IMG/VR virus record: IMGVR_UViG_3300028275_000006
Location: 124,001 to 188,000 of that record
DNA: 64,000 nt
Direction: 5' to 3' (one strand)
Position numbers and translations under genes: made by a program. Shown here one piece after another: positions 8,851 to 57,374 of this stretch (its first letter is position 1; the number at the start of each line of letters is the position of its first letter). The notes below the pieces were generated by a model that worked only from the letters and a program-made list of their open reading frames with translations, did no database searches and was not told the origin of the DNA.

Positions 8851-8851
8851 A

Positions 8852-21632: not shown

Positions 21633-21712
21633 GTGATCTTTCTATGAAATAAAACTGCGATACTGTGTATTATAGGCTCGGACAGGGCATCTGTCAATGT
21701 GTTTGGTAAAAT

Positions 21713-21735
21713 AAAAAAGGGCCCGAAGGCCCTTT
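21713..21735 (-). terminator. terminator after tmRNA
   Basis: AAAGGGCC-TTCG-GGCCC hairpin followed by T6. Confidence 0.8.
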
Positions 21736-21739
21736 GGTT

Positions 21740-22066
21740 GTTTGGGTTACAAGGTAAGTCCTACCCCGGAGTTGCAGTTTCTTAGGCTGCTACTAGACCA
21801 TTGTCGGCTGTGAAGCCTTCAACAGTGAAGTACTCAAATGTAGATGCGTTTGCATTTACTAGTTTTGCTTGATTTACGGTCATCGCCTACCGTGTTGCCG
21901 TCTCTACTATCTACCCCTGTCGAAACCATGGCAGGCCCATCATAAAAACACAATACCAAAGTAAATTTACAATGAATACCAAAGTAAATTTATGTCCTTA
22001 TGGTGGACCTGGCGGGAGTCGAACCCGCGTCCAGAAGTCCTTCGCTTTGAAGGGATTACAACAATT
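21740..22066 (-). ncRNA. ssrA: circularly permuted (two-piece) tmRNA
   Basis: Acceptor piece ending GGTTCGACTCCCGCCAGGTCCACCA (22001) precedes coding piece starting GGGCCTG (21938); G3:U70; tag frame 21782-21853 ANASTFEYFTVEGFTADNGLVAA*. Confidence 0.9.
21952..21992. repeat. 18-nt tandem direct repeat in tmRNA intervening segment
   Basis: AATACCAAAGTAAATTTA at 21952-21969 and 21975-21992. Confidence 0.9.
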
Positions 22067-22068
22067 CT

Positions 22069-22647
22069 TTAAACGCCTGCCTTTGCTAATGTGCCAAATA
22101 TCCAAGGTTTTGGATCTAAGTCAATTGTCCAAGATGTCGGTTCATTTCTCATATCTTTTTTGTACACAATATTTATTTGGTCGTGTGTTAGTTTGACTAA
22201 GAAGCCGTCTGTTAATTGTTTTAGATTAGCCTTAACTGTTGCGTAATCTACAAAGGCAACAGCGAATGTTCCTTTAATTTGGACTATCATTAAATGATTA
22301 AAAACTTTGTCTAGTGTAGTTCTTTGATTCTTACTTTCGTAAACATTTTTTAATTTAAGACTGATTGTCTTTTTAGGAGTTCCTGACTTTGCGTAGAACA
22401 AAGGTTCGTTGCCAGTTTTAACTTCTACGTCGCCATTGGTCCAATCGGTAAATTTTATATCGTAATCGCGAACGTCAGTCCACTCGATGTTCTTTTTATG
22501 ATTAGATAATTGCATTGCCGCAATAATGAATTTTTCTTTCATCATTCGATTTGTGGATTCATTTAATACTGTCTGATGACAGATGTTATTACAAGCATCT
22601 GAAAACTTGTCAATATCTACCCAATCTAAAAATTCATTGTACTGCAT
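22069..22647 (-). CDS. hypothetical protein, possible PD-(D/E)xK nuclease fold
   Basis: AT-rich; D..GDVEVKT motif. Confidence 0.55.
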   Translation of the reverse strand: MQYNEFLDWVDIDKFSDACNNICHQTVLNESTNRMMKEKFIIAAMQLSNHKKNIEWTDVRDYDIKFTDWTNGDVEVKTGNEPLFYAKSGTPKKTISLKLKNVYESKNQRTTLDKVFNHLMIVQIKGTFAVAFVDYATVKANLKQLTDGFLVKLTHDQINIVYKKDMRNEPTSWTIDLDPKPWIFGTLAKAGV

Positions 22648-31110: not shown

Positions 31111-31174
31111 CTGCTAAGGTTGTAATAATTGCTAATATTAAGATGTTTTTCAGCATCCAATATTTAGTTAGATT

Positions 31175-34671: not shown

Positions 34672-34680
34672 GGAACCCTC

Positions 34681-35655: not shown

Positions 35656-35738
35656 CGTTTTTACAGAATTAGGTTATCTTCCCTAACTCGCTCCTTGGTC
35701 TAAGACCATTAAAAAATTTAAAGTGCTACCTCTCTTTC

Positions 35739-36908
35739 TTATTTTTGTTTGTTAACTACTTCTTTTTTAACAAACCCTTTACGCTTCTCTACGTCCTGCA
35801 CTTGTACCCAATCACCTTCGCTCCCGGTTATGAATACTCGTGTATTTGGCTTAAACTGCCAAGTCCTTTGACTCTTTTCGTTTGGCTCCTTGTATATAAA
35901 CTGAGCATCCTTTAGAATTGCTTCTGTAGGTAACTTCTCTAGTTCTTTTGCGGCGGTACTGGGTACGGCCTTGGTTTCGGTTTCGGATTTGGTTTGTGAT
36001 TGAACCACGACATCTTTCTTCTCCTCTACTTTAACTTCTTCTTTAATCTCAGAGCTAATTACCGGCTGGGCCGCTGGTGCTGGTACAGGTGCCTTGGCCG
36101 CTGGTGCGGATTCTGGTTTAAACTCCCATACACCTTTACGTTGTCCTTCCTTAATTAACTCTACGACTGCCATTTCAATAGTTGCCTTTGTAGCGTAAGT
36201 GCCAGGTTCATTGATAGTTAAACCTGCTTCTGCTTCAAATGCCTTAGTGCCTGCGTCAAAGAATTTTAATGCAGATACGCTGTCTGCTGAACTTAAGATA
36301 GTCTTTTGTACTGTCACTGTGGCTAATACCTTACCAGTGTTTACGCTAACTGCTCGTAAACTTACTGTTACTGTATCAGTGCTCCACTGTGTATTTTTGC
36401 CTATGCCAAATATACGTTGACCTACACCACCGCTGGTAGTGCTTTGATCGTAGCCTACTATTCCGCCTTCTACAATAATTCCAGCGAATTGCATTGGTAG
36501 CAATGGTTTAGCATCTTTACCTTCATATGCTTCGCGCATTTGCCTAATAATTAAACGTTCTTTAGTTAGGTTATCAATGCCCACACGTTCTACAACGTCG
36601 AACCATTGACCGCGTCCTACATTTTGTAATGCCTGTATTAAGAATGTTTCTGCACCCTGTGTCACTGCTGTTGATAAACTGGCAATGTTTGCCTGCGGTC
36701 TACGTTGACCTGTTTTATCAGTAAAACTATAAACGGCCACGCTTAGTGGTCTTCCAGCGATTGGACTAGGTATTGTATCAAATTCTTTCTTAACATTAGT
36801 CATTTGCCCTGTAACTTCAGGACTCTTGTCTAGTACTCCAGTTGTCTGCATAACAGCACAACCTGAAAGCATAGTTAAAACTGCTAGGGATAGTATTGTC
36901 TTTTTCAT
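35739..36908 (-). CDS. csgG: curli secretion channel CsgG with C-terminal SH3-like domain
   Basis: Lipobox LSGC; AVYSFTDKTGQRRP, STAVTQGA, WFDVVER..IDNLTKER. Confidence 0.9.
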   Translation of the reverse strand: MKKTILSLAVLTMLSGCAVMQTTGVLDKSPEVTGQMTNVKKEFDTIPSPIAGRPLSVAVYSFTDKTGQRRPQANIASLSTAVTQGAETFLIQALQNVGRGQWFDVVERVGIDNLTKERLIIRQMREAYEGKDAKPLLPMQFAGIIVEGGIVGYDQSTTSGGVGQRIFGIGKNTQWSTDTVTVSLRAVSVNTGKVLATVTVQKTILSSADSVSALKFFDAGTKAFEAEAGLTINEPGTYATKATIEMAVVELIKEGQRKGVWEFKPESAPAAKAPVPAPAAQPVISSEIKEEVKVEEKKDVVVQSQTKSETETKAVPSTAAKELEKLPTEAILKDAQFIYKEPNEKSQRTWQFKPNTRVFITGSEGDWVQVQDVEKRKGFVKKEVVNKQK

Positions 36909-36911
36909 GTC

Positions 36912-37451
36912 TTAGTTCCCCGGCATTTGGAATGAACTTAATGGAACATACACACAACTCATTCCAGTGTCTGTGCATGATGCTGTACTTGGGTTAGTGG
37001 CTGTAGGATCTGCAATCTTTAACATAATGCAGTATCCGTAGGCTGTTGAACAGTTAGCATCGTTAGCACTACTAACTCTGCCCCAACTAATATAGTTGCC
37101 CTGGAAGTCAATGTTGCCAGAACAGTTTGTGTTGCTACTTGCTGTACAGTTGTTATTGGCAAACATAGCGGTTGCTACGTTCTGACTAATCTGTGCATAG
37201 ATACGTGATTCTAAGTTACTAACAAACTTAGCAAGGTTGGTGTTTTTCTTATCTGCGGCTGCTTTGTCAATTTCAGCCTGTAGTTTATCTGCACGTTCTT
37301 TCTGACGTGTGCGCTCTTGATTCTCAATGGTTAATACATGACTGCTGTAACCTACGCCGTTAAAGGCAGGACTCTTAAAGGTGTAATCACCTAAAGGTGC
37401 TGCCGATACAATCATAGGCAATAATGCTATAAGTGATAATAGTTTTTTCAT
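36912..37451 (-). CDS. csgF: curli assembly protein CsgF-like
   Basis: Signal peptide; FKSPAFNG, LAKFVSNLESRIYAQIS; next to csgG. Confidence 0.75.
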   Translation of the reverse strand: MKKLLSLIALLPMIVSAAPLGDYTFKSPAFNGVGYSSHVLTIENQERTRQKERADKLQAEIDKAAADKKNTNLAKFVSNLESRIYAQISQNVATAMFANNNCTASSNTNCSGNIDFQGNYISWGRVSSANDANCSTAYGYCIMLKIADPTATNPSTASCTDTGMSCVYVPLSSFQMPGN

Positions 37452-37565: not shown

Positions 37566-38255
37566 TTATTTTCTATCACCAAACAACTGTAGTAAATTAA
37601 TGAACAGATTAATAAAATCCATATATAGTGTTAATGCACCTGTTACTTCGGTTGCAGGATCAGAGTCGATTGAAACCATTTCTCGTATTTGCTGTGTATC
37701 GTAAGCAGTTAATCCTAGAAAGATAATAATTGCTAATGCACTGATAACCATGGCCATTACACTACTACCAATAAAGATGTTAACAATACTGGCAATAACA
37801 ATAGCAATCAATCCAATGAACATAAACTGTCCAAGACTTTCCAAACTACGTTTTGTAAAGTATCCATAGAAGCTCATTGTACCAAACAAGATCGCCGCAC
37901 CCATAAACGCACTAACAATACTGCCCATGGTAAAGATAGCAAAAATTGTAGCAAAGCTCAAACCCATTAATGCCGCAAAACCATGTAAGCATAGTTGGGC
38001 GACTTGTTTACTAGGGTTATTAGATAGTACCATGCTAACACCAAAGATAGCAACCAGTGGTGCAAAAATTACAATCCACTTCATTACACCTGTAAAGAAG
38101 AATTGTAACAATTCTGGGCTAGTACCTACAAAGTAACTAACAATCATAGACACAAGAACTGCTAGGCTCATGTGTCCATAGACACGACCCATTGCTTCAT
38201 TGATCTGTGCGGCTGAACGGTAAATTCCAGTACCTGTGTAACTTGCACCAAACAT
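37566..38255 (-). CDS. Bax inhibitor-1/YccA family membrane protein
   Basis: 7 TM; AYDTQQIR and LTLYMDFINLFINLLQLFG. Confidence 0.9.
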   Translation of the reverse strand: MFGASYTGTGIYRSAAQINEAMGRVYGHMSLAVLVSMIVSYFVGTSPELLQFFFTGVMKWIVIFAPLVAIFGVSMVLSNNPSKQVAQLCLHGFAALMGLSFATIFAIFTMGSIVSAFMGAAILFGTMSFYGYFTKRSLESLGQFMFIGLIAIVIASIVNIFIGSSVMAMVISALAIIIFLGLTAYDTQQIREMVSIDSDPATEVTGALTLYMDFINLFINLLQLFGDRK

Positions 38256-38403: not shown

Positions 38404-39957
38404 TTAACGGATTGCGAAACCCATTTTACCAACTGGTCTTCTTGTAGCGTAGAAGTTACTGCTGGCATCCAATTTAATTGTGCCCGTGAATACTGGAGGA
38501 TAGATAACTTCAAAATTGGAGAAGTATGCTCCATTTGATGGTTTACCTTCAGCGTCCTTAGTAGGCTTCTGTTGTAATGAAGTTTTGACTTGTAACATAT
38601 TGGAACGTTCCAGAACTGCTTTGAAGAAAGCATCTGTCTTGTAGTCCTTGTTTACTTTATTTGCTGTGCCAGTTGCTACTGCGGCTAATAAATGCCAACC
38701 AATTCTGTAGTCTGGTCTTGTCGAATCGTCTGTGCCTTTATAAACTAACAATCCTTTTAAGTCGCCTAGTGTTTCGTCATCAACATGCGGCTGATCGCTG
38801 TCAATGATTTCCATAATTTTTTCTGCTTGTGTACCATCGATGATGCCTACTTTGACACCTAATTCTAATGCACCAGCAATAGAACCATTTCGTTTCCATT
38901 GTGCGCTTTTAGCCACATAACTCATGTCAGGGTCTTTAATAATGTTTACAATGTCTAGTAGCTCTTGGAAGCCTGGGTTGACTTTAGGATCAAACAATCC
39001 TTCATAACGTTGCGGGTATGCCGCTATATCGTCTACCACACCAGATACAGATGCCTTTGCGCCGCCTTGCTTGTCTTTGGAACTTACACGAATCTTCACA
39101 TCACCTGAAAACTTCAAATAACTATCGTATAGTTTTTCAGCAGGATCGTTTGGAAATTCTACACCAACGGCTTCTTCAAACTTCAAACCCATTCCGGCTT
39201 CGGCCTGTTGCCATGCACCACTTAAGAACTTTTTCTTAATTAATGAAATTGGTGCGGCTGTTTCACCTAAATCAATTTCGTAACTCTTAGCATAGTCGCC
39301 GGCGCCGGGGACAGGATTACTGCTACCAGAAGCAACAGCCTGCAATAGTTGTACTACCTGTTGTTTAATAGCATCTGCTAGATCATCACGCTCTTGAATA
39401 GAACCTTGCACTTGTGTAGGAATATCATCTACAGCAATGGTTGTATTAGTAGGAATAATTCCAACAGGTTTTAAATTAGTTAGAGCACGTTGTTGTACTC
39501 CAGAAATTTTATCTTCCTCTCCTGCTTTGCCGCTTAGTTGTACATAACCAGTTAGGTCTGAAAACTGTTTAGTCTGTAAGAAGATTGGATAAGCACCTGG
39601 CTTCTTAGCAGGCTTAAGAGCGATCCATGCTATGTTCTTTTTAGATTTTTCATCTTTAAAAATCATTACTAATGCGGCACCTGCTTTTTCAGGTATGCTT
39701 AGTCCGCCCACTGGCGGAAGTGTTAGTGCGTTAGATACTGCTACATTGTTAGCCTTCACATAGTCCATAATCTCTGGAACTAGTTCTTGATAATTGTCTC
39801 GCTTGTCTACGTCTTGTGGAAACACTTGAGATGCAATCATATGAATAACATTTCCATCTGCATTTTTAAATGCTACACGTTTGCCACGGCCGGCTTCTTC
39901 TGCACGGCGGGCCATGCCGCCTTCAGATTCAAATAAAATAAATTCTTTTGCTCTCAT
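38404..39957 (-). CDS. putative virion-packaged protein, possible nuclease-like fold
   Basis: Start MRAKEFILFES; LYDSY...RVSSK segment. Confidence 0.65.
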   Translation of the reverse strand: MRAKEFILFESEGGMARRAEEAGRGKRVAFKNADGNVIHMIASQVFPQDVDKRDNYQELVPEIMDYVKANNVAVSNALTLPPVGGLSIPEKAGAALVMIFKDEKSKKNIAWIALKPAKKPGAYPIFLQTKQFSDLTGYVQLSGKAGEEDKISGVQQRALTNLKPVGIIPTNTTIAVDDIPTQVQGSIQERDDLADAIKQQVVQLLQAVASGSSNPVPGAGDYAKSYEIDLGETAAPISLIKKKFLSGAWQQAEAGMGLKFEEAVGVEFPNDPAEKLYDSYLKFSGDVKIRVSSKDKQGGAKASVSGVVDDIAAYPQRYEGLFDPKVNPGFQELLDIVNIIKDPDMSYVAKSAQWKRNGSIAGALELGVKVGIIDGTQAEKIMEIIDSDQPHVDDETLGDLKGLLVYKGTDDSTRPDYRIGWHLLAAVATGTANKVNKDYKTDAFFKAVLERSNMLQVKTSLQQKPTKDAEGKPSNGAYFSNFEVIYPPVFTGTIKLDASSNFYATRRPVGKMGFAIR

Positions 39958-40862
39958 TCACAGTTCCAACGTTTACGTGCTTTGCAGATTGCCTTGTCTG
40001 GTGTCTTAGTGCAATCAATATTGTGCATTTTCTTTTGGCCATCACTTCTAGCACAAAAACTTGATCTACGCTTACTTGCCTTAGATCCTTTCTTTAATTT
40101 GCTAGGAGGTGTAGTGACTGCTGTTTTTAATTTACTACCAGGATGTTCTCTACGATATGCTTTAACGGCTTTACTGCTCATGCCATCGGTTTTGTCTTTC
40201 TTATTAACCTTCTGCCAATCTTCTGACATACCTTCTGGGCCAATTTGAACTAACCATTCTAATTCATCGTCTGCATCTCTAACACTGAAGAATTTAACAT
40301 TAGGAATCTTCTTAGCCGCAAACCATTTGTTAGCCACTTTAACCATTAGGGCACGATGTTGACGATCATTAACATCCGGTTCATATCCGCCTGTTAAGTT
40401 TGCCCACAATGCACTTGGATTGCCATGGCGATCGTAACCCAACAATTCACGCCATTGTTGTTGTAAGCGATCTGGCACATACTGATCCAATTCAGTGTCG
40501 CTCATCCACTCTCGGCCAATATCGACACCTTCCGCCATGGCGGCTTCAGTTAAGTCTTCTGGGGCAAAACCAATATAACTCTTACCATGCTCATCGCCAG
40601 ACTGCACAACAAATGCGCCGCCTTCTTCTGATTCGATTTCGCCAATTTCCCAACCCATACGATTTAATAGTTTTTCAACTTTTTGTTGTATGTCGTCATC
40701 GCCATTGTACCAAATACGAGCGTACTTGAGTAATGTTTCTTCTTCGTCGCCACTATTATCCGGCGCAAATTCTTTTACATTTTGCTTTTTCTTTTTAGCA
40801 ATAGCGATAGCGGCTTGTTGTGCGGCATTGGTTGCTTCTGTGATGAATTCTTTTGCTCTCAT
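39954..40862 (-). CDS. mosaic putative internal head protein
   Basis: Start MRAKEFITEA; basic Cys-containing C-terminal domain (SFCARS...ARKRWNC). Confidence 0.65.
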   Translation of the reverse strand: MRAKEFITEATNAAQQAAIAIAKKKKQNVKEFAPDNSGDEEETLLKYARIWYNGDDDIQQKVEKLLNRMGWEIGEIESEEGGAFVVQSGDEHGKSYIGFAPEDLTEAAMAEGVDIGREWMSDTELDQYVPDRLQQQWRELLGYDRHGNPSALWANLTGGYEPDVNDRQHRALMVKVANKWFAAKKIPNVKFFSVRDADDELEWLVQIGPEGMSEDWQKVNKKDKTDGMSSKAVKAYRREHPGSKLKTAVTTPPSKLKKGSKASKRRSSFCARSDGQKKMHNIDCTKTPDKAICKARKRWNCE

Positions 40863-40885: not shown

Positions 40886-41566
40886 TTAGCGAATTTCTGG
40901 GAACAAACATTCCTGTATGAATACCCTAACATCCTCTTCATCTAAGCCTAAACTAGCCATTACACGTGGAGTATGTGGGTTACATTTTTGATTGATTGCG
41001 TAGTAGTTCTGCGCTTCTGTGGTATTTTCAGTAGTATTATTAGTTTCTGCTACAGTTTCTAAGTAATGTGCCAGTGTATCTTTAGCCATTTCTATAATCT
41101 GCGCTAGTTCTTCTTCGCTCTGCACATTACCTGCGGCTACCATGCTAGGGCTGAATATGTTGGTAGCCCATTCTGGTAGTTGGCGTTCTCTGCGCCATTC
41201 GAGTCGTTTAACATAATCAGCAAACCATTCCATCATAGGATGATTAGAATCTCCTGCTTTGCTGTAATCATGAAAACAGCCAGTAATCTTATTCTTGCCT
41301 GCTACAACGTCAAAGCCGTAAATTGGTGCTGGATTGTGTAAGTGTGGGAAGATGCAACAATGCATCATCCAGAGTCCTTTGGTTTCTCTAGCATCCACAA
41401 CATCAACGTGAGCACGGCGATAAGACCCACTGGTCCAAACACGATTAACCCAACCAGGCTGATTAAAGCGATCCATGCCCGGTTCAAAGATTTCTGTTCC
41501 TGTTTCATTAAAACTGCTTTCTAAAAGATGCTGAACTTCAATCAGCGTGTCCCATACTTTACTCAT
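40886..41566 (-). CDS. pcyX: ferredoxin-dependent bilin reductase, PcyX/PcyA type
   Basis: RRAHVDVV, WMMHCCIFP, YGFDVVAG, LPEWA.NIFS, QKCNPHT. Confidence 0.8.
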   Translation of the reverse strand: MSKVWDTLIEVQHLLESSFNETGTEIFEPGMDRFNQPGWVNRVWTSGSYRRAHVDVVDARETKGLWMMHCCIFPHLHNPAPIYGFDVVAGKNKITGCFHDYSKAGDSNHPMMEWFADYVKRLEWRRERQLPEWATNIFSPSMVAAGNVQSEEELAQIIEMAKDTLAHYLETVAETNNTTENTTEAQNYYAINQKCNPHTPRVMASLGLDEEDVRVFIQECLFPEIR

Positions 41567-42113
41567 AGTGTGGAACTATATCCATCATTTGATCAAAGAA
41601 TTTTGCCGCAAAATCAAAACATACTCTTGCTTCATCTGCTAGACTATCATCTAGTTTTGCACGAATTGCTTCTTTGATCTTTTCAGGTTCGTCTCCAAAC
41701 TGATAGTATTTGCCACTGCCTGGAACTCTTTTAGCAATCATTTGACCGCCTGATAAATCTCCCATGTGACGTACATAAATGTGTGCCATCAACTTTTTAG
41801 GATCATCTTTGATGCTGAGAATATATTTGATATATTCATCCACTACCGGACACATTTTTGGTTCTTCAGGATTGTCTGAGCCCCATAGTTCTATGAAGTC
41901 AGATAAAATTGCAGGTGCTCTGCGTATCTCTGGTAGACCGGAAAGTAATCCATGTGGCATAGCACAGACTTCTAAAATCTCATACATTGGATGTTGATTT
42001 TTTAGATATGTTGCGTATAGTTTAGGATTTACATTTCCTGAAAATAAGACTTTAACAAAAGGCCTTGTTTCTGCTCTGCGATGTTGCTCGTGTGTAAGTT
42101 CTTTTAGACTCAT
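41559..42113 (-). CDS. hemO: heme oxygenase
   Basis: LKELTHEQHRRAE, AHIYVRHMGDLSGGQMI. Confidence 0.92.
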   Translation of the reverse strand: MSLKELTHEQHRRAETRPFVKVLFSGNVNPKLYATYLKNQHPMYEILEVCAMPHGLLSGLPEIRRAPAILSDFIELWGSDNPEEPKMCPVVDEYIKYILSIKDDPKKLMAHIYVRHMGDLSGGQMIAKRVPGSGKYYQFGDEPEKIKEAIRAKLDDSLADEARVCFDFAAKFFDQMMDIVPHYE

Positions 42114-42418
42114 TCGGAATCCACTTTAATTTGTAATGGGAAGCCTGCTTGACGTGCAAGGTGTGTTGCCTCAACACCTTTCTGCTCGGCGATCTCGTAG
42201 GTATAAACACCTACTACTGCTGAACCTTCATTGTGTACAGTTAATGTAATCTGTTCAGCATTTTCTCTGGAGTGCTTAAACACAGTCATTAGTAATTCAA
42301 TAACAAAGTCGATTGGAGTTTTGTTATCATTTAAAAACAATACCTTGTAACGCTTAGGTTCAGTGATATCGATTTTAATCTTTTCGTCAATTTTAATTTC
42401 GGTGTCTACAGTTGGCAT
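42110..42418 (-). CDS. clpS: ClpS adaptor
   Basis: YKVLFLNDNKTPIDFV, VHNEG.AVVGVY, FPLQIKV. Confidence 0.93.
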   Translation of the reverse strand: MPTVDTEIKIDEKIKIDITEPKRYKVLFLNDNKTPIDFVIELLMTVFKHSRENAEQITLTVHNEGSAVVGVYTYEIAEQKGVEATHLARQAGFPLQIKVDSE

Positions 42419-42473
42419 ATTGGCCCTCCATTCTTAATGGTATTTATTAGTGGGGGCCGGAGCCCCCGATTTT

Positions 42474-42920
42474 TTACTTAACTTCTTTCACTTCAATCTT
42501 ACGTGGCAGAAGTGCTTCAGGAACAATGCGCTCGATTTGAATTGTAAGCACACCATCCTTAATTTCTGCTGACTTGATTTCCATGTGTTCTGCTAGAGTA
42601 AATCTACGTTCGAAATCACGGAAAGCAAGACCTCTGTGTAAGTACTCAACTTGGTATTCGCCTTCGTTAGCATTGATTGCCTTCTCGCCGCGAATAGTTA
42701 ATTGATCACCTTCCACTTCTACTGCAACTTCATCTTTACCGAATCCTGCTACAGCAACAACTATATTATACTGGTTTTCTCCAGACTTTTCAATATTATA
42801 TGGAGGATAGTTGTTCGAAATCTGATGTGCAAAGCGTGTTTCGAAAGTATCGAATAGATTGTCGAAACCGATTAATGCTCTGTTTAGAGCGGCTGTGTCA
42901 AAACGTGTTAATTGTGTCAT
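42474..42920 (-). CDS. small heat shock protein Hsp20/IbpA-like
   Basis: NYPPYNI, YLHRGLA.RDF.R.F.LAE, DGVL. Confidence 0.93.
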   Translation of the reverse strand: MTQLTRFDTAALNRALIGFDNLFDTFETRFAHQISNNYPPYNIEKSGENQYNIVVAVAGFGKDEVAVEVEGDQLTIRGEKAINANEGEYQVEYLHRGLAFRDFERRFTLAEHMEIKSAEIKDGVLTIQIERIVPEALLPRKIEVKEVK

Positions 42921-42986: not shown

Positions 42987-44852
42987 TTAGTTTGTTTCCT
43001 TAAACTCGGCATTGATTGCATCTTCCTGAACAGGTTCAAATGGCTTGTCCTGTTTGGCCTGTGCAATCGCTTGACTGGCCACTGCTAGTTCGCTAGTCTT
43101 TTGTACGATAGCGTCTTTGTCAGAACCTGTCAATTCTGTTTGAAGTGCTTTAACAGCATCTTCGATCTTTGTTTTATCTGTGTCTGAAAGTGTTGTTTCT
43201 TTCATGTCGTTTTCAACATTGTTGATCAACGCCTCGGCTGTGTTCCTAGCATCGATAAGTTCACGTGCCTTCTTATCTGATTCGGCATTAACTTCTGCAT
43301 CACGAACCATTTGTTCGATCTGCTCTTTGCTTAGACCACTGTCACTCTTAATTGTGATTTGATTTTCTTTGCCGGTGTTTTTATCTTTAGCACTAATTTT
43401 CATAATGCCGTTAGCATCGATGTCAAATGTAACTTCAATCTGTGGAGTGCCACGACGTGCTGGAGCAATACCGTCTAACTTAAACTCACCCAGGAGTTTG
43501 TTGTATTGGAATAGTTCACGCTCGCCTTGTGCTACTTTGATATCAACTGCTGGTTGATTATCTTCTGCTGTGCTAAACACTTGGCTAGCCTTAGTAGGTA
43601 TAGTTGTGTTCTTTTGTACAAGTTTAGTAAACACACCTCCCATAGTTTCAATGCCTAGTGACAATGGTGTTACGTCTAACAATAGAACGTCTGTACGATC
43701 ACCTGCTAGTACTGAACCTTGAATAGCCGCACCAACTGCTACTGCTTCGTCTGGGTTAACGTCTTTGCGTGGAGCCTTACCGAATAGTTTTTCAACTGCT
43801 TCTTGTACCTTGGGCATACGTGTTTGCCCACCAACAAGAATAACTTCGTCAATTTCTGATGGAGTAACACCTGCATCCTTCATAGCAACCTTACATGGTT
43901 CGATACTACGTTGGATTAGTTCTTCTACCAATGCTTCTAACTTAGCACGAGTAATCTTAACATTCATGTGCTTAGGACCACTTGCGTCTGCTGTGATGTA
44001 AGGTAAGTTAACATCAGTGCTGGCACTGCTAGATAACTCAATCTTGGCTTTTTCAGCGGCTTCTTTTAGACGTTGTAAGGCCAACATGTCTTTCTTAAGG
44101 TTCATGCCTGACTCTTTCTTAAACTCGTCGACCAAGTAGTCCATAATACGTTGGTCAAAGTCTTCACCACCTAAGAATGTGTCGCCGTTAGTGCTTAGTA
44201 CTTCGATTTGTTTTTCGCCATCCACGTTGGCAATTTCAATGATCGATACATCGAAAGTACCACCACCAAGGTCATAAACAGCAACTTTGCGATCTGCTTT
44301 GTCGTTTTTATCAACACCATAAGCAAGAGCTGCCGCAGTAGGCTCGTTAATAATACGCAATACTTCCAAGCCTGCGATTTTTCCAGCATCCTTAGTTGCC
44401 TGTCTTTGGCTGTCATTAAAGTATGCGGGAACTGTGATAACTGCTTGAGTAACTTTTTCACCTAAATAATCCTCTGCTGTCTTTTTCATCTTACGCAGAA
44501 CTTCAGCACTAATCTGCGGAGGTGCTAATTCTTTACCCTGTGCGCGAACCCATGCATCTCCATTCTTGGATTCCATGATTTCGTAAGGCATTAGGTCAAT
44601 ATCTTTTTGTACAGCCTGTTCTTTGAACTTACGTCCAATAAGACGCTTGGCCGCATAGATTGTGTTTTTGGGATTTGTTACTGCTTGACGTTTAGCACTA
44701 GCACCTACAAGTACTTCGTCTGTAGAATAGGCAACAATACTAGGTGTAGTTCTTGCACCTTCGCTGTTTTCAATAACTTTGGAATTTCCTGACTCGATGA
44801 CTGCTACGCATGAATTGGTAGTACCCAAGTCGATACCGATGACTTTGCTCAT
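42987..44852 (-). CDS. dnaK: Hsp70 chaperone DnaK
   Basis: [33 protein letters not shown]. Confidence 0.98.
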
Positions 44853-44942: not shown

Positions 44943-45227
44943 TCAGATTTTATCTAAATTTGGTATTTTAGACCATTTTTTTAACTTTTCGACTTTTGCC
45001 CTTTTTGCTTCGTGCAATTTGCCCCAACTGACTACTTCGTTGATCATTAGTATATCAATCATAGCCAGCATATCCCCTAGTTCTTCTTCTAGGTGCTGTC
45101 GATTGGTCTGCTCTGTTCCGTGTTTAGCATTGTCTATGCCAAAACGCCTAATTTTACTTACTGCTTGAATAACTTCTGCACACTCTTCCTGCAGAATGTC
45201 CATAACTTCGTTATTTTGTTCGTCCAT
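44943..45227 (-). CDS. MazG-like nucleotide pyrophosphohydrolase
   Basis: QEECAEVIQAVSK...LEEELGD. Confidence 0.8.
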   Translation of the reverse strand: MDEQNNEVMDILQEECAEVIQAVSKIRRFGIDNAKHGTEQTNRQHLEEELGDMLAMIDILMINEVVSWGKLHEAKRAKVEKLKKWSKIPNLDKI

Positions 45228-45229: not shown

Positions 45230-45463
45230 TTAATACATTTTTTTAGGTAGTTGTTGTTTACGCAGTTCTTTTTGCCAACGATTCTTAGCCGCAGACTTTG
45301 CTCGCTTACGAGCAGTTGTTGGCTTTTCATAGAACTCGCGATCTCTTAGTTCCTGCAATAATCCGCTATCCTGTATTTTCTTTTTGAAACGGCGTAGAGC
45401 TCTTTCAACGGGTTCACCGTCTTTTACAGTAACTCCACTACCACGTAGTTGTTTATCCCTCAT
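45230..45463 (-). CDS. rpsU: ribosomal protein bS21
   Basis: ERALRRFKKK...RDREFYEKPT..RKRAK.AA. Confidence 0.9.
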   Translation of the reverse strand: MRDKQLRGSGVTVKDGEPVERALRRFKKKIQDSGLLQELRDREFYEKPTTARKRAKSAAKNRWQKELRKQQLPKKMY

Positions 45464-50152: not shown

Positions 50153-50473
50153 TTATACTCGAAATGACTCGCCACAGCCACAACGGTCACGTTCATTTGG
50201 ATTGGTAAAGTCAAATCCTTCGTTAAGACCTTTCTTTACCCATTCAACTTGTACACCGTCCAGGTATGCTAGACTTTTTGGATCAACAAATACGTGTACA
50301 CCGTGACTAACAAAACTCATATCTTCTTTTGTGGGCTCGTCAACAAATTCAATCATATAAGCCATTCCACTACAGCCTGTAGTTTTAACACCTAATCGAA
50401 TGCCTAGCCCTTTGCCCCTACGGTCTAGTGTAATCTTTACTCGCTCTGCGGCTTTCTCAGACAGTGATATCAT
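50153..50473 (-). CDS. iscA: Fe-S assembly A-type carrier IscA
   Basis: [20 protein letters not shown]. Confidence 0.93.
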
Positions 50474-50846
50474 TTTTTGCCTTGTAGTCTGCTACTGCGG
50501 CTTTGATAGCATCTTCCGCAAGAATTGAACAATGGATTTTAACGGGTGGAAGTGCAAGTTCTTCGGCAATCGCGCTGTTCTTAATCTCTCCCGCTTGATC
50601 CAACGTTTTTCCTTTGAGCCACTCGGTGACCAACGATGAACTAGCAATAGCACTTCCGCATCCGTATGTCTTGAATTTCGCATCCTCAATAATGCCCTCG
50701 TTATTAACTTTAATTTGTAACTTCATCACGTCGCCGCAAGCAGGTGCTCCCACCATGCCTGTGCCAACGCCTTCCTCGTCTTTAGGGAAACTACCTACGT
50801 TGCGAGGATTTTCGTAGTGATCTATAACTCTATCGGAATAAGCCAT
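50457..50846 (-). CDS. iscU: Fe-S scaffold IscU
   Basis: [26 protein letters not shown]. Confidence 0.96.
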
Positions 50847-50855
50847 TTAATCTCC

Positions 50856-51161
50856 TTAAACTGAAAACGAACTTCCACATCCACAAGTTGTTTGTGCATT
50901 TGGATTTTCAATATTAAAACTAGAGCCCATTAAGTCATCGATAAAGTCGACTTTGGCTCCTTGCAAATAGTTCATGCTCATTGAATCTATTAATATTCTA
51001 CCAAATTCAAAGTCGTCTTCTTCTTTGTTTTTTGCAAAATCGAACACGTAATTAAATCCCGAACATCCTCCACCTTCTATTGCAATTCTAAGGTATTTTT
51101 CTTTGCTTTCATCCAGCACCATTTGAATTTCTTTTTCAGCGGTTTCTGTTATTGTAATCAT
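50856..51161 (-). CDS. erpA: ErpA/IscA-family Fe-S carrier
   Basis: GGGCSGF, NPNAQTTCGCGSSF. Confidence 0.85.
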   Translation of the reverse strand: MITITETAEKEIQMVLDESKEKYLRIAIEGGGCSGFNYVFDFAKNKEEDDFEFGRILIDSMSMNYLQGAKVDFIDDLMGSSFNIENPNAQTTCGCGSSFSV

Positions 51162-53776: not shown

Positions 53777-54877
53777 TTATAAATTTGGTAATGCGTCATA
53801 ATCGATTGCATCGCTCATAACGCCAATAACGTAGTTAGTGCTTTCATTCTCTTGTAGAGCAGTTTGTTTTTTACTAGTATCGCTGTGCTTGTTAAACCAA
53901 GGAATAGGAGTTGTCTTAGGTGCAGGGTTAGTGTACTTAATGCCAATCTCCTTGAGTGCGTTATATGCGGTGTAATCTACAAAGTCTTTAAGAATGTTAG
54001 CGTTTAATCCAATCACTGGTCCTTTTTGGAACAAGTAGTCGGCCCATGCTTTTTCTTCACGTATTACATCCATATATAGCGCCAAGACTTCTGCTTCACA
54101 CTCTGTCTTGATTCGAGCAAAGCGTGGATCTTCTTTGACTACTTGATTGATCAAATAGGCAGTCCAACCTTTGTGTAGTAATTCATCTTGTAGAATTAAA
54201 CTGATAATGTTGCCATTACCAATAAAGATTTTATTTTCTACCATTGCTAGACTTGTAGCAAACGATACCATAAAGCGGAATGCTTCTAAGGCATAACTTG
54301 CGTTCAACGCTAACCAAATTGACTTGACGTGTTCTACTTCGGAAATTTCTTCGCCTAGTTCTTTGCGGCAGTTAATTAAGTGTAGGTCGTCATAATACTT
54401 GCCTACACTACTAGCCATGTCTACAATCTCTTTAGTGTCGTGGATAGTATTGAATACTTCTTTAGGCACATTATAGATGTTACGGATGATATGACTGTAA
54501 CTACGACTATGAATATTTGTTTCAAAGAATGTCCAGTTGTAAACCAGTGCTTCTAGTTCTGGCAGACTTACGACCGGAGTAAAGATTTGACTTGGGCCAC
54601 GGCCTTGTAAACTATCTAACGCTGTTTGACGCAACAAGTTAGATGTAAAGATATGTTTTACGGCATCGCTGGCATCTTTAAAGTCCTGTGCGTCCTTAGT
54701 TAAACTAATTTCTTCAGGTACCCAAAAGAAGCCGCGAGCAGTAGTTTCGAAATTTTGAATTTTAGGATACTTTACTTCCTCAAATCTTTGAATAGTAACA
54801 GGACCCTGTGGGTCCAAGAACATCTTACGATTAAGATAGTCTGTCTTTGTGTTTAAATTGTATTGCGCTTTACTCAT
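53777..54877 (-). CDS. nrdB: ribonucleotide reductase class Ia beta subunit
   Basis: FWVPEEI, LDSLQGR, ETNIHSRSY, LEAFRF, DELLH, C-terminal Y. Confidence 0.95.
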   Translation of the reverse strand: MSKAQYNLNTKTDYLNRKMFLDPQGPVTIQRFEEVKYPKIQNFETTARGFFWVPEEISLTKDAQDFKDASDAVKHIFTSNLLRQTALDSLQGRGPSQIFTPVVSLPELEALVYNWTFFETNIHSRSYSHIIRNIYNVPKEVFNTIHDTKEIVDMASSVGKYYDDLHLINCRKELGEEISEVEHVKSIWLALNASYALEAFRFMVSFATSLAMVENKIFIGNGNIISLILQDELLHKGWTAYLINQVVKEDPRFARIKTECEAEVLALYMDVIREEKAWADYLFQKGPVIGLNANILKDFVDYTAYNALKEIGIKYTNPAPKTTPIPWFNKHSDTSKKQTALQENESTNYVIGVMSDAIDYDALPNL

Positions 54878-55047
54878 TTTGTTTCCAATGTTATTTGTCC
54901 GTCTACGATTGTTACACGTTTAACTGGACGGCCATCGACGTACACAGGAACTTCAGTAAAGTTTTTCTTAATATTCGTAGCATCGGCCTTGTGTGCCAAC
55001 TGTTGCCACGCTTTAAATATTTCTTGATGTATGTCGTAAGCGTCCAT
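54874..55047 (-). CDS. 57-aa hypothetical protein between nrdA and nrdB
   Basis: MDAYDIHQEIFKAW..., overlaps both neighbours by start/stop coupling. Confidence 0.6.
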   Translation of the reverse strand: MDAYDIHQEIFKAWQQLAHKADATNIKKNFTEVPVYVDGRPVKRVTIVDGQITLETK

Positions 55048-57374
55048 TATAATTTACATGCCTCACAATCGTCTTCTAAATCTACTTCTACATAATTCTG
55101 TGCTACAGTTTGTACTAGTTCTTCTTCTTTGGCTTTACTACCTGCCTTGTTGATTAGGCTATAATAGAAAGTTTTTAGTCCCCAGTAGTGTGCCTGCATC
55201 AAGTTCTTAGCAATCAATGTAGTTGGCACTTTACGATCCGCAAAGTGTGCTGGATTGTAGAATGTGTTTGTACTAATTGACTGGTCAACATAGGCCGCAA
55301 GTACAGCCGCAGTCTTTAAGTAACCATCGCAGTCTTTCTGTTCCCACATCATTTGATATTTGTTCTTGAGTTTATGATACTCGGGGACAACTTGTACAAA
55401 GGAACCTGCTTTGCTTTCCTTAACTGAAATAAGCGACATAGGCATTTCAATGCCATTAGTGCTGTTAATGACAACACTAGAACTTTCAACAGGGGCAATG
55501 GCCATAAGTGTAGCATTTCTAACTCCGTGTTCTAACATCTCGCCACGCAAAGTTTCCCAATCAAGTTCCGGAGTAAAGTCTGCTAGTTCATTAACACCTT
55601 TAGCACGTAACTCCCAAGGAAACTCTCCCTGACCGTATCGTGTATGTGCGCTATGCAGACAAGGTCCACGTTCTTTGGCCAATTCAACTGTGGCTTCTGT
55701 TAGGTAGTAGGCTTGATGCTCCATCCATGTCTTGACATCTTGTAGTGCATCTTTTTCGCCATACTTGAGTCCACGCTTGGCGTGCCAGTATGCTAAGTTA
55801 GTAACGCCAATACCCAATGGTTGGATTTCGTCGTTGCTTAGTTTACTTTGAATACTTAGGAAGTCTTGGTAGTCCAGTATGTTGCATAGACTACGCTGAA
55901 GGATGCGGCAAGCTCTACGCATATCCTCAGGATTGCGGAATGCTCCCCAATTAATGGAGCCCAGAGTACAGAGAGCGATACGACCAGCATCGTCATCGAG
56001 ACGCTTAAATGGCTTAGTAGGTAATAGTATTTCACAGCACAAATTACTTTGATAGATTGTATGATACTCAGGATCAAATGGACCTTGGTTCATTACGTTG
56101 TCTACAAACACAAGATAGATACGTCCTGTGTCTGTACGTTCTTTTAGAATACCGCCTTTAAAAACTTCTTCTGCTGAAATTACTTTCTTGCGAAGATCTT
56201 TTTGCTTTTCATATTTGACATATAATTCTTCAAATAGTTTAGTATCCTGATAAAATGCTTCGTACAAATCTGGTACTTCATTAGGATCAAAGAATGTTAT
56301 GTTTTCTTTGTTCTTGAATCGGCGCCAAAAGAACGCTGAGAGGACGACTCCGTAGTCCATGTGGCGGACTCTTGTCTCCTCAGTTCCTTGATTATTCTTG
56401 AGAACAATAAGATCATCGAACTGATGATGCCAAATAGGATAAAACACAGTAGCACTTGCATTACGAATGCCTCCTTGACTGCAACTCCTTAAATCACCGA
56501 ACCACTTCTTCAAGAAGGGGATCATGCCAGTGTGCATGATTTCTCCACCACGGATCGGGGAGCCCAATGGGCGTAGTCGACCGATTTCCAATCCAATCCC
56601 CGCTCTCTTACTGGCGTACTTAGCCATCATCTCTCCAGAAGCAAATATGCTATCCAGATCGTCGTCACTGCGGATAAGAACACAACTAGAAAACTGCTTA
56701 GTTGGAGTGCCAAGCCCTGCCAACACAGGTGTAGCAAGAGTAAACAAACCATCGGATGCTGCCGCATAGTATTCTTTAATGTAACGCATTCTTGCACTAT
56801 TCGGTTCTTCCTTATGGAAGACTGTAGCCGCGGCCACCATATATCTAACCTGTGGAGTTTCATAAATTTCCTTTGTCGCACGATTGCGTACCAAATACTT
56901 CTCTATTAACTGCTCAATAGCCGCATAACTATACTCTTCATCTTTAGAATGGTCTAACATATCATCCATTCTATTCCAATCATCTTCGCTATACCAATTC
57001 ATTAGTTCTGGTGTGTATAGTCCGACTTCAATATTTTTCTTTACGATCTCGTAGAGGCGAGGAGGCTCGTATTCGCCATATACATCCTTACGTAGCATAC
57101 TCAAGCGTTGCTTGCCTGCTACATATTGATAATTTACATGACCTACATCTGGATTATGTTCAACGTCAATTAAATCTACAATCGCTCGTAGTGTAATTTC
57201 ATCGATTTCTTGAGTAGTAATGCCATCATAGAAATGAGGCTGTGCTTTAATTTCAATCATCGACTGACTTACGTCTGCAATACCAGCACATACTTTCGCT
57301 ACCTGTGCCTGCCACTTTTCAATCGTTAATTTCTCTCTGTTACCGTTTCTTTTTATTACTGTTATATTTGTCAT
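55047..57374 (-). CDS. nrdA: ribonucleotide reductase class Ia alpha subunit
   Basis: ATP cone VIKRNG, SSCV, QSNLCCEI, YY, C-terminal CEAC. Confidence 0.97.
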   Translation of the reverse strand: MTNITVIKRNGNREKLTIEKWQAQVAKVCAGIADVSQSMIEIKAQPHFYDGITTQEIDEITLRAIVDLIDVEHNPDVGHVNYQYVAGKQRLSMLRKDVYGEYEPPRLYEIVKKNIEVGLYTPELMNWYSEDDWNRMDDMLDHSKDEEYSYAAIEQLIEKYLVRNRATKEIYETPQVRYMVAAATVFHKEEPNSARMRYIKEYYAAASDGLFTLATPVLAGLGTPTKQFSSCVLIRSDDDLDSIFASGEMMAKYASKRAGIGLEIGRLRPLGSPIRGGEIMHTGMIPFLKKWFGDLRSCSQGGIRNASATVFYPIWHHQFDDLIVLKNNQGTEETRVRHMDYGVVLSAFFWRRFKNKENITFFDPNEVPDLYEAFYQDTKLFEELYVKYEKQKDLRKKVISAEEVFKGGILKERTDTGRIYLVFVDNVMNQGPFDPEYHTIYQSNLCCEILLPTKPFKRLDDDAGRIALCTLGSINWGAFRNPEDMRRACRILQRSLCNILDYQDFLSIQSKLSNDEIQPLGIGVTNLAYWHAKRGLKYGEKDALQDVKTWMEHQAYYLTEATVELAKERGPCLHSAHTRYGQGEFPWELRAKGVNELADFTPELDWETLRGEMLEHGVRNATLMAIAPVESSSVVINSTNGIEMPMSLISVKESKAGSFVQVVPEYHKLKNKYQMMWEQKDCDGYLKTAAVLAAYVDQSISTNTFYNPAHFADRKVPTTLIAKNLMQAHYWGLKTFYYSLINKAGSKAKEEELVQTVAQNYVEVDLEDDCEACKL

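Follow-up and report, generated by a model that had tools for sequence, protein, structure and literature searches.

A riverine jumbo phage encoding a hemO-pcyX bilin cassette and a tail-fiber protein with predicted phycobiliprotein-like domains

We found that a giant river phage, which probably infects a non-photosynthetic bacterium, carries intact genes predicted to convert heme into a pink bilin pigment, and that elsewhere in the same genome its tail-fiber protein contains six domains resembling the pigment-binding proteins of cyanobacteria. Together, these findings offer a testable answer to why such phages make bilins. The stretch of DNA analyzed here, referred to as the window, comprises 64,000 nucleotides (positions 124,001 to 188,000 of IMG/VR record IMGVR_UViG_3300028275_000006) and lies in a 212.5-kb fragment of a riverine jumbo myovirus of roughly 350-390 kb, of which a second, overlapping assembly of 270 kb exists. 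A first-pass annotation, made from the sequence of the window alone, had described a translationally coupled heme oxygenase and PcyX-type bilin reductase in a phage without photosynthesis genes in view, and our analysis confirms that observation. Its statement that no bilin-binding protein is recognizable is correct for the window, but not for the genome, where a candidate acceptor is encoded just outside it.

Cassettes of this kind are already known, whereas the proposed acceptor appears to be undescribed. The reason why phages of non-photosynthetic bacteria carry bilin-synthesis genes has been an open question since PcyX was described, and the latest paper on the topic still calls it enigmatic (PMC11480375).

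The clpS-hemO-pcyX trio and its conserved neighborhood

The hemO stop and the pcyX start overlap by 8 nt (ATGAGTAA), while the clpS stop and the hemO start overlap by 4 nt (ATGA), so that the three genes form a translationally coupled trio. This trio lies inside a conserved mazG-dnaK-hsp20-clpS-hemO-pcyX module that is found in about 70 related contigs, and the 4-nt overlap between clpS and hemO is kept in 35 of 42 dereplicated related loci. The features of the region, together with other loci that bear on its interpretation, are listed in Table 1.

Table 1. Coordinates of the cassette, its module, and other relevant features (window positions unless stated otherwise)
Position	Strand	Feature	Supporting data
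40886..41566	-	pcyX, AX-clade (PcyX-type) ferredoxin-dependent bilin reductase, 226 aa; predicted to reduce biliverdin IXalpha to phycoerythrobilin	Fe_bilin_red PF05996, E 2.2e-16, 60.6 bits (cut-off 31)
41559..42113	-	hemO, short canonical heme oxygenase, 184 aa	Heme_oxygenase PF01126, E 3.9e-23, 82.8 bits; HO-2 and HO-1 structures, E 1e-14
42110..42418	-	clpS, predicted Clp protease N-degron adaptor, 102 aa	PF02617, E 1e-29, 102.6 bits (above cut-off); all NCBIfam ClpS equivalogs below their cut-offs (best 95 bits against 149)
42451..42468	.	GC-rich hairpin in the 55-nt hsp20-clpS spacer	T-run on the opposite strand; not a canonical terminator for the gene strand
42474..42920	-	hsp20, small heat-shock protein of the module	PF00011, E 7.6e-19; synteny
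42987..44852	-	dnaK (Hsp70) of the module	Recognized from its translation alone; 74-93% identity in about 70 related loci
44943..45227	-	mazG-like pyrophosphohydrolase, upstream end of the module	PF03819, E 1.1e-6; synteny
38404..40862	-	Two proteins directly downstream of pcyX (302 aa with DUF6321, and 517 aa)	Both start with MRAKEFI; slot hypervariable in relatives but keeps an MR-x-x-[ED]-[FI] start
50153..51161	-	IscA-like / IscU / IscA-like Fe-S cluster assembly genes; possible sinks for heme-derived iron	IscU, TIGR01999, 225.6 bits (cut-off 192.4); PF01521 matched twice
53777..57374	-	nrdB and nrdA, class I ribonucleotide reductase (di-iron small subunit)	
21712..22154	-	Permuted (two-piece) tmRNA of the betaproteobacterial type	RF01850, 129 bits (gathering score 84); alpha model 50 bits; cyano model 41 bits (gathering score 70)
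G000:C1:85207-94515 (position in the genome record, about 30 kb before window position 1)	-	Tail-fiber protein, 3102 aa, with six repeats of roughly 150 aa	PHROG tail-fiber families

The PcyX assignment is well supported by sequence comparison. The reductase matches the solved PcyX_EBK42635 structure (5OWG) at E 1.6e-69, against 3e-11 for Synechocystis PcyA, and it reaches only 83.8 bits on the NCBIfam PcyA equivalog NF002760, whose cut-off is 206 bits. In a quick tree of 82 representatives, it falls in the AX clade, which is separated from the PcyA clade with SH-aLRT support of 100. The residues Asp55, Met67, His69, and Asp86 are invariant in 14 relatives; His69 and Asp86 correspond to the catalytic His88 and Asp105 of PcyA, and Asp55 occupies the position of PcyA Glu76, so that the signature H-D-M-H-D contrasts with H-E-V-H-D in the PcyA-type representatives. 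However, residue 55 varies (D/S/N/K/Q) and is polyphyletic within the clade, and phycoerythrobilin (PEB) as the product is therefore inferred only from the Asp55 match. In HemO, the proximal His11 and the H116-x-G-D-x-x-G-G distal-helix motif (G118, D119, G122, and G123) are likewise invariant in 14 relatives. Natural HemO-FDBR fusion proteins also exist.

Within the freshwater clade, PcyX shows a mean pairwise identity of 0.82, compared with 0.80 for DnaK and 0.55 for HemO, which has been swapped between two types that are only 35-45% identical. The high conservation of PcyX is partly an ascertainment effect, because the loci were chosen by PcyX similarity. Synonymous sites are saturated at these distances. 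Contigs from four riverine metatranscriptome libraries are 100% identical to the cassette, and in three of them a single contig runs across clpS and hemO and into pcyX, which indicates presence in RNA libraries rather than proven transcription, strand, or timing. A promoter and terminator scan found no more sites than in shuffled sequence. All genes were called with genetic code 11 only, although a tRNA with a CTA anticodon is present.

Among previously described systems, the PhiHemO-PhiPcyX mini-cassette of uncultured marine phages (Ledermann et al. 2016, 2018; structure 5OWG) is also phage-borne, has the same adjacent order of hemO then pcyX and the same Asp55/Met67/His69/Asp86 signature, shares about half of its residues between the crystallized enzyme and ours, and has PEB as its expected product. 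The cassette reported here differs in sitting in a freshwater jumbo myovirus, in being joined into the clpS-hemO-pcyX trio within a chaperone module, and in having a candidate acceptor encoded in its genome. The ho1 / pcyX-like / vAlaS genes of large freshwater phages of non-cyanobacterial hosts (Chen et al. 2020 preprint; Nat Commun 2024, PMC11480375) also pair an adjacent ho1 with an AX-clade reductase; however, searches of our 212.5-kb record found neither ALA synthase nor pmoC, and the characterized CB_2 enzyme lacks Asp55 and makes phycocyanobilin, whereas ours keeps Asp55. The nearest cultured-phage homologues belong to Pelagibacter phage Mosig EXVC030M (PcyX 50%, HemO 45% identity), in which the genes also overlap and the host is also heterotrophic. 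Mosig is 141 kb, places the pair after 2OG-oxygenases and a ferrochelatase, has its own 2Fe-2S ferredoxin, and lacks the clpS coupling.

Phycobiliprotein-like repeats in the tail-fiber protein

Five of the six repeats of the tail-fiber protein carry the Cys-x-Arg-Asp chromophore motif, within a broader K-C-x-R-D-x-G-Y...G-G pattern at the Cys84 site of phycobiliproteins. One single repeat lies, for example, at residues 1132-1268 of the protein. The repeats were located by motif and HMM, as a BLAST comparison of the giant protein against itself found none, and a Pfam scan of the whole protein gave no hit. When a three-repeat segment was scanned alone, PF00502 scored 23.1 bits against a gathering score of 22.2. 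One single unit scored 19.1 bits, and the best single-unit E-value was 5e-4; single units fall below the Pfam cut-off, yet PF00502 was hit by 10 of 51 of them, while no other family was hit by more than 2. A profile of five repeats searched against all PDB sequences hit only phycocyanin alpha chains (best E 0.021), and the alignment places the repeat Cys, Arg, and Asp, invariant in these five repeats, on CpcA Cys84, Arg86, and Asp87. Across the lineage, C-x-R-D is kept in 55 of 76 unique units, and where it is lost, all three residues often go together.

Structure prediction points in the same direction. The AF2 model of the repeat has a pLDDT of 85 and a pTM of 0.82, and all rows in the Foldseek PDB top-50 list are phycobiliproteins or their derivatives, at probability 1.00 and TM 0.54-0.69. 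An independent search with VIA-align 2 returned phycobiliproteins as the top 8 hits (Z 12.9-15.7), and the top cluster in a protein-atlas feature search consists of Phycobilisome-domain proteins. Nevertheless, the fold match is to a common helical architecture, and the sequence signals are individually weak.

The cassette and the repeats co-occur in at least 10 records of the lineage, marine and freshwater, and in all four records that are at least 70% complete. Among 50,697 deposited phage genomes, the repeat was found in 285 records, almost only in cyanophage tail and baseplate proteins: 284 are cyanophages and one is labeled only “Marine.” The nearest cultured relatives by DNA polymerase (Phosso, Atu_ph07, and Rak2-like phages) matched neither the cassette nor the repeat in those searches. 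The link is not universal for PcyX phages, as Mosig has no such repeat in the 96 kb that holds its tail genes.

The giant tail and baseplate proteins of T4-like cyanophages, such as P-HM2 gp7 and S-PM2 p088, contain the same repeat domain, including K-C-x-R-D motifs, but those phages infect hosts that already make phycobilins; to our knowledge, and in the papers searched, the domain has not been linked to phycobiliproteins. Its presence in cyanophages could reflect common ancestry of tail modules rather than bilin use. Phycobiliprotein alpha subunits and the ApcE bilin-binding domain share the globin-type fold and the motif at the Cys84 site, and ApcE attaches its bilin autocatalytically. The phage domain differs in being repeated six times in one virion protein, without an alpha/beta partner or an identified lyase, at a sequence identity of only 13-26%. 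By analogy, the HO / pre-PcyA / BBAG clusters of heterotrophic bacteria (Rockwell et al. 2023) follow the same logic of a heme oxygenase, an FDBR, and a bilin-binding globin related to phycobiliproteins in a non-photosynthetic setting, and BBAGs self-attach bilin without a lyase. Here, however, the globin domains are tandem repeats inside a giant tail-fiber protein, are not clustered with the enzymes, and accompany PcyX rather than pre-PcyA.

Possible purposes of the cassette

Our best, though tentative, reading is that the cassette supplies PEB to the phage's own tail fiber. In this view, HemO would open host heme to biliverdin IXalpha, releasing Fe2+ and CO, and PcyX would use host ferredoxin for a four-electron reduction to PEB, both enzymes being made together with ClpS from overlapping reading frames. 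In established phycobiliprotein chemistry, only FDBR-reduced bilins have the A-ring ethylidene group that forms the thioether with the motif cysteine, which would explain why a reductase is kept and not just a heme oxygenase; iron release would then be a useful side benefit. What the analysis establishes is the integrity of the genes and their catalytic residues, the PcyX-type signature, the coupling and synteny, the predicted fold and motif of the repeats, the co-occurrence of cassette and repeats, and the absence of photosynthesis, ferredoxin, and CpeS- or CpeT-type lyase genes from the records searched. The activity of the enzymes, PEB as the product, host ferredoxin as the electron donor, covalent attachment of bilin to the repeats, and any effect of the pigment on the virion are inferred. 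No CpeT or CpeS family match was found in 7 records, so attachment would, on present evidence, have to be autocatalytic. In addition, the tail-fiber gene lies about 70 kb from the cassette rather than clustered with it.

The first-pass annotation had inferred iron release for the Fe-S and NrdB genes, or bilin as a signal or antioxidant, and this interpretation is only partly supported. Its points on coupling, the PcyX type, the phage nature of the genome, and the lack of photosynthesis genes hold, but the repeats, which it could not see, shift the most likely purpose from a by-product or signal to a chromophore for the phage's own protein. Iron and heme economy is the main rival, plausible although we consider it somewhat less likely. 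ClpS would redirect host proteolysis, HemO would degrade freed or free heme to recover Fe2+ for the Fe-S assembly genes (IscU and two IscA), the RNR small subunit, and a di-iron fatty-acid desaturase also encoded in the window, and PcyX would only clear biliverdin so that HemO keeps turning over, leaving the bilin as waste and the repeats without chromophore. The conserved clpS coupling and the neighboring Fe-S genes are new supporting context for this reading, a ClpP-family protease and a tmRNA are also encoded, and iron supply has been discussed for this cassette (PMC11480375). In E. coli, the iron-storage protein Dps is a ClpS substrate, and biliverdin release limits heme oxygenase turnover. 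However, iron release explains HemO only and not why a specific four-electron reductase with the PcyX signature is, within this ascertainment-biased sample, about as conserved as DnaK while HemO itself has been swapped. Product clearance would not need a defined regiospecificity, no phage-encoded ferredoxin was found with the reductase, and Mosig pairs its cassette with a ferrochelatase, which consumes iron.

It is less likely still that the bilin acts on the host, with PEB or biliverdin binding a sensor (a bacteriophytochrome, a BBAG-type globin, or another protein) to reprogram the cell, or serving as an antioxidant alongside the AhpC/AhpD-like peroxidase pair encoded in the window. Heterotrophic beta- and gammaproteobacteria are reported to carry HO/pre-PcyA/BBAG clusters (PMC13446030), and this possibility has been raised for freshwater phage PcyA (PMC11480375). 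With no host known, though, no target can be named, searches found no GAF or PHY protein encoded by the phage, and the idea offers no explanation for the phage's own phycobiliprotein-like domains. Very unlikely is that the phage is a cyanophage whose cassette boosts host phycobilisome pigment supply, as proposed for PebS/HO1 in marine cyanomyoviruses. The near restriction of the repeat to cyanophages among cultured phages, the presence of hsp20 and mazG, which are typical cyanomyovirus genes, and the occurrence of cyanobacteria in rivers favor it, whereas the gene content and host signals described below argue against it.

If the acceptor reading is true, it would provide the first bilin acceptor encoded by a phage, the first pigmented virion component, a mechanistic candidate for the unexplained light-dependent adsorption of marine cyanophages, and a new branch in the history of phycobiliproteins beyond BBAGs. 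A more speculative extension, which we regard as improbable but not excluded, is that the pigment-bearing virion may sense light. The domain shared with cyanomyovirus baseplate and tail-fiber giants would then be the long-sought basis of the unexplained light-dependent adsorption of marine cyanophages, and heterotroph-infecting jumbo phages would carry hemO-pcyX because their hosts cannot supply the chromophore.

Gene content and host signals

No photosynthesis gene is present in the window. Searches of the 212.5-kb record found no Photo_RC, hli, GAF, plant-type ferredoxin, pmoC, or ALA-synthase family match. Related records (6-9 per gene family, all incomplete, at 50-79%) yielded no psbA/psbD, hli, cpeT/cpeS, or petF-type ferredoxin, and no GAF apart from one sub-threshold match of 12.6 bits in a single related record.

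The host is very probably not a cyanobacterium. The tmRNA fits the beta model and fails the cyano model (Table 1), and a marine relative carries an alpha-type tmRNA at 145 bits. The phage also carries the curli secretion genes CsgG and CsgF, and its nearest cultured relatives by DNA polymerase are jumbo phages of Sinorhizobium, Agrobacterium (Rhizobiales), and enterobacteria. The betaproteobacteria-type tmRNA and the curli genes point to a proteobacterial host. A more precise assignment is weakly supported: 13 hits in species-representative genomes are phage contigs binned into MAGs of about 10 phyla, so the “Polynucleobacter” label is weak, and that MAG has no beta-type tmRNA. Only 3 of 151 sampled Burkholderiales genomes have one, and the closest to the phage tmRNA is that of a 2.0-Mb genome with about 40% GC around the tmRNA locus.

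The clpS, hemO and pcyX genes and their conserved context

[quoted passage not shown] The 184-aa product of the first matches the Pfam heme oxygenase family PF01126 (E 3.9e-23), and the 226-aa product of the second matches the ferredoxin-dependent bilin reductase family PF05996 (E 2.2e-16). The hemO stop and the reductase start share ATGAGTAA, and, one gene further up, the clpS stop and the hemO start share ATGA, so that three genes rather than two are read from overlapping frames.

The reductase matches the crystallised phage enzyme PcyX_EBK42635 (5OWG) at E 1.6e-69 but Synechocystis PcyA only at 3e-11, and it scores 84 bits on the NCBIfam PcyA equivalog, whose cut-off is 206. It has His69 and Asp86, the counterparts of PcyA His88 and Asp105, and Asp55 where PcyA has Glu76. 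This substitution is given as the hallmark of PcyX enzymes that make phycoerythrobilin (PEB) in a 2026 paper on pre-PcyA enzymes (PMC13446030), and its absence explains why the freshwater CB_2 enzyme makes phycocyanobilin instead (PMC11480375). These residues are invariant in 14 relatives, including the enzyme of Pelagibacter phage Mosig. A search of 1.84 billion cluster representatives returned 330 relatives, and the full-length ones split, with support of 100 in a quick tree, into a PcyA-type group with the signature H-E-V-H-D and an AX-type group in which the window protein sits with H-D-M-H-D. However, residue 55 varies within the AX group, and PEB as the product is therefore inferred from the Asp55 match. 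HemO keeps the proximal histidine and the distal G-D-x-x-G-G motif in all 14 relatives aligned. Three natural fusions were found in the AX-clade family (P0030, 504 aa; P0061, 391 aa; P0084, 410 aa): HemO and FDBR are joined in one polypeptide twice, which supports the functional coupling, and an FDBR is fused to a methyltransferase domain.

Among 79 IMG/VR loci chosen by PcyX similarity (77-100% identity), about 70 show the order mazG, dnaK, hsp20, clpS, hemO, pcyX. In 42 dereplicated loci, the 4-nt clpS-hemO overlap is kept in 35 and hemO and pcyX overlap in 41, while marine relatives with only 45-58% PcyX identity keep hsp20-clpS-hemO-pcyX. Mean pairwise identity in the freshwater set is 0.82 for PcyX, 0.80 for DnaK, 0.65 for ClpS, 0.60 for Hsp20 and 0.55 for HemO. 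HemO falls into two types that are only 35-45% identical to each other yet occupy the same slot between clpS and pcyX, while PcyX stays above 77% identical to the window protein, which suggests replacement of hemO by recombination. Although the PcyX figure is inflated by how the loci were chosen, the contrast with HemO suggests that the reductase, and not only the oxygenase, is under strong constraint. The slot right after pcyX is occupied in nearly every relative by a hypervariable 360-640-aa protein beginning M-R-x-x-[ED]-[FI], and in the window by two such proteins, both starting MRAKEFI; this start resembles the T4 capsid-targeting sequence of injected internal proteins.

Coordinates of the features described, as window positions unless another record or locus is named
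Feature	Position	Strand
Array of 31 tRNA genes	3147-10803	-
GOLLD RNA, full length (RF02032, 207 bits)	7122-7585	-
tRNA-Lys(CTT) embedded in the GOLLD RNA	7449-7522	-
AhpD-family protein and AhpC-type peroxiredoxin flanking a small GDSL-like ORF	11647-13135	-
Separate tRNA, anticodon CTA (amber-reading; labelled Pyl by ARAGORN)	15927-16000	-
Two-piece tmRNA, beta type	21712-22154	-
Chlamydial Hc1-like histone H1 protein	23506-23817	-
ClpP-family protease (host-like ClpP or head-maturation protease)	24872-25435	-
Envelope and signalling gene cluster	28432-37451	-
Bax-inhibitor/YccA-like membrane protein	37566-38255	-
Two proteins in the slot after pcyX	38404-40862	-
pcyX, bilin reductase	40886-41566	-
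hemO, heme oxygenase	41559-42113	-
Ribosomal protein S21	45230-45463	-
IscA-like, IscU (above the NCBIfam equivalog cut-off), IscA-like	50153-51161	-
Giant tail-fibre ORF, 3102 aa, in the window's record (G000)	G000:C1:85207-94515	-
tmRNA, alpha type, marine relative on a 335-kb contig (G003)	G003:C57:42038-42370	
Hypervariable slot after pcyX in related loci L002-L080	about 8690-10600	
HemO slot showing the two types (loci L012, L021-L026, L039, L042, L049, L058, L060, L064 and others)	about 7460-7975	
hemO and truncated pcyX, Shewanella surugensis DSM 17177, contig 69 (L105)	L105:7453-8225	

The phage genome and its probable host

The window, bases 124001-188000, belongs to a single 212,542-bp IMG/VR virus record that CheckV rates as 55% complete. 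The record encodes T4-like baseplate proteins and a family B DNA polymerase, whose nearest cultured relatives are those of Sinorhizobium phage Phosso (50%), Agrobacterium phage Atu_ph07 (47%) and the Rak2-like enterobacterial jumbo phages (44%). Related contigs of 245-280 kb are rated 70-79% complete, so the full genome is probably 350-390 kb. A second 270-kb assembly of the same phage (G158, IMGVR_UViG_3300024503_000015) overlaps the window's record at the tail-fibre gene with 100% identity and extends the other way; it holds a further 3837-aa ORF with at least 11 repeat units of the kind described below, and the two assemblies joined would give a nearly complete genome. The cassette region was found in 18 DNA runs and 6 metatranscriptome runs labelled riverine metagenome. 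Contigs from four of the RNA libraries are 100% identical to it, and in three of them a single contig runs across clpS, hemO and into pcyX, which shows presence in RNA libraries but does not prove transcription.

The window holds 33 tRNA genes and a tmRNA, 34 genes in all, and the GOLLD RNA lies inside the phage tRNA array. Despite the presence of a tRNA with anticodon CTA, the ORFs examined were intact under genetic code 11, which was used in all analyses. The envelope and signalling cluster comprises a CHASE2-adenylate/guanylate cyclase, an unannotated 226-aa ORF, two curlin-repeat proteins, a FecR-like protein, CsgG with an SH3 domain, and CsgF. The AhpD-family protein and AhpC-type peroxiredoxin represent a peroxide-defence pair in a phage.

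No photosystem genes, hli, cpeT or cpeS, or plant-type ferredoxin were found in the records searched; these are up to 79% complete, and because all phage records are incomplete such absences are provisional. The two-piece tmRNA scores 129 bits on the betaproteobacterial model (gathering score 84), 50 bits on the alpha model and 41 bits on the cyanobacterial model (gathering score 70), whereas a marine relative on a 335-kb contig carries, at a comparable place, an alpha-type tmRNA at 145 bits. The tmRNA type therefore differs among relatives, which we take as a sign that it follows the host class rather than the phage lineage; only 3 of 151 sampled Burkholderiales genomes have the beta type. 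The window also encodes the curli secretion proteins CsgG and CsgF. Of thirteen PcyX hits in species-representative bacterial genomes, twelve (L093-L104) are MAG contigs spread over about ten phyla, including a 335-kb contig in a Neomarinimicrobiota MAG. Most show the same phage synteny, so they are most likely mis-binned phage DNA and give no reliable host; the thirteenth is an isolate genome of Shewanella surugensis. We conclude that the host is very probably a proteobacterium, likely a betaproteobacterium with a two-piece tmRNA, and not a cyanobacterium.

Phycobiliprotein-like repeats predicted in a tail-fibre protein

A six-frame search of the whole record with the Pfam Phycobilisome model gave two sub-threshold hits inside one giant ORF, about 30 kb before window position 1 and about 70 kb from the cassette. 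The whole protein gave no Pfam hit, while a 451-aa segment scored 23.1 bits against a cut-off of 22.2. The protein contains six tandem repeats of about 150 aa, five of which have the motif C-x-R-D-x-[GAE]-[YF] followed by D-[LI]-x-[YF]-[GES]-G-[NT], with Cys, Arg and Asp invariant among these five. PHROGs classes the protein with tail-fibre families, and the repeats are the matching part.

Several lines of evidence point to phycobiliproteins. A profile of the five repeats, searched against all 177,635 distinct PDB sequences, returned 16 hits, all of them phycocyanin alpha chains aligned so that the repeat Cys, Arg and Asp fall on Cys84, Arg86 and Asp87, the chromophore-attachment site, although the best E of 0.021 is weak on its own. 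An AlphaFold2 model built from 51 repeat units is all-helical, with pLDDT 85.4 and pTM 0.82. In a Foldseek search of the PDB, all rows in the top-50 list were phycobiliproteins, smURFP or the ApcE bilin domain (probability 1.00, TM 0.54-0.69). An independent VIA-align 2 search of 48,161 representative chains gave phycobiliproteins as the top 8 (Z 12.9-15.7, rmsd 2-3 A over 116-130 residues), ahead of a photocobilin bilin domain (Z 12.5) and globin-coupled sensors. The structural match is to a common helical fold, however, and gains weight only from the agreeing sequence motif and the distribution. Ten of 51 units hit PF00502 individually, with no other family hit by more than two units, and a language-model feature search placed a cyanobacterial Phycobilisome-domain cluster first (score 0.86), which is a lead only.

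Across this phage lineage the repeat occurs many times in several giant ORFs per genome. In 76 unique units, C-x-R-D is kept in 55; of the rest, about ten have lost all three residues together and five have lost only the Cys, a pattern that fits a ligand site better than a purely structural role. Cassette and repeats co-occur in at least ten records, marine and freshwater, and in all four records that are at least 70% complete. Among 50,697 deposited phage genomes, tblastn found the repeat region in 285 records, of which 284 are cyanophages and one is labelled only "Marine". The matches lie in giant virion proteins such as P-HM2 gp7, S-PM2 p088 and proteins annotated as short tail fibres; those proteins also carry K-C-x-R-D motifs, and a structural search of predicted viral proteins agrees. 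The nearest cultured relatives of this phage by polymerase match neither the cassette nor the repeat in those searches. There is one clear counter-example, since Mosig has hemO-pcyX and its own 2Fe-2S ferredoxin but no repeat in the 96 kb that holds its tail and baseplate genes.

Possible roles of the cassette and comparison with known systems

From the established enzymology of these families, HemO would convert heme to biliverdin IXalpha, Fe2+ and CO, and PcyX would reduce biliverdin by four electrons to PEB. Both enzymes need reductant and, as no ferredoxin is encoded in the nine records searched, the host must supply it. In the reading that we tentatively prefer, though with less than even confidence, PEB, which unlike biliverdin has the A-ring ethylidene needed for thioether formation, attaches to the motif cysteine of the tail-fibre repeats. 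No lyase of the CpeT or CpeS family was found in the seven records searched, so attachment would probably be autocatalytic, as in ApcE and BBAGs (Rockwell et al. 2023). This reading would explain why a reductase is kept, why it is so conserved, and why a phage of a bilin-free host needs its own pathway while cyanophages with the same domain often do not. What our analysis establishes directly concerns the sequences, namely the intact genes with their catalytic residues, the overlaps and synteny, the motif and predicted fold of the repeats, and their co-occurrence with the cassette; enzyme activity, PEB as the product, host ferredoxin as donor and bilin attachment are inferred.

The interpretation in the first-pass annotation, iron release for the Fe-S and NrdB genes or bilin as a signal or antioxidant, is partly supported. 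An iron economy is the main rival and only somewhat more doubtful than the acceptor reading: ClpS-directed proteolysis and HemO would free iron for the IscA-IscU-IscA proteins, NrdB and desaturase of the phage, and PcyX would merely clear the product. The two readings are not exclusive. A host-directed signal or antioxidant role is unlikely, and a cyanobacterial host is very unlikely. A wider reading, which we also consider improbable, concerns cyanophages. P-HM2 and P-HM1 do not adsorb to their host in the dark, and P-HM2 gp7 is the top match to the repeat region; if the repeats bind bilin, they are a candidate virion photoreceptor.

The cassette belongs to the described HemO-PcyX kind, and similar pairs have been noted in large freshwater phages and in pelagimyophages, where their purpose is called enigmatic. 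Three features seem new against the literature that we could search: the conserved clpS coupling, with no paper found that links ClpS with a phage heme oxygenase and bilin reductase, the two-type HemO replacement, and the phycobiliprotein-like repeats in tail fibres. The closest analogue in logic is the HO / pre-PcyA / BBAG cluster of heterotrophic bacteria. PcyX is described in the literature as confined to phages; however, the isolate genome of Shewanella surugensis DSM 17177 carries an intact hemO overlapping a pcyX that is cut off after 74 codons, just past the catalytic His, with transposase-like ORFs on both sides.
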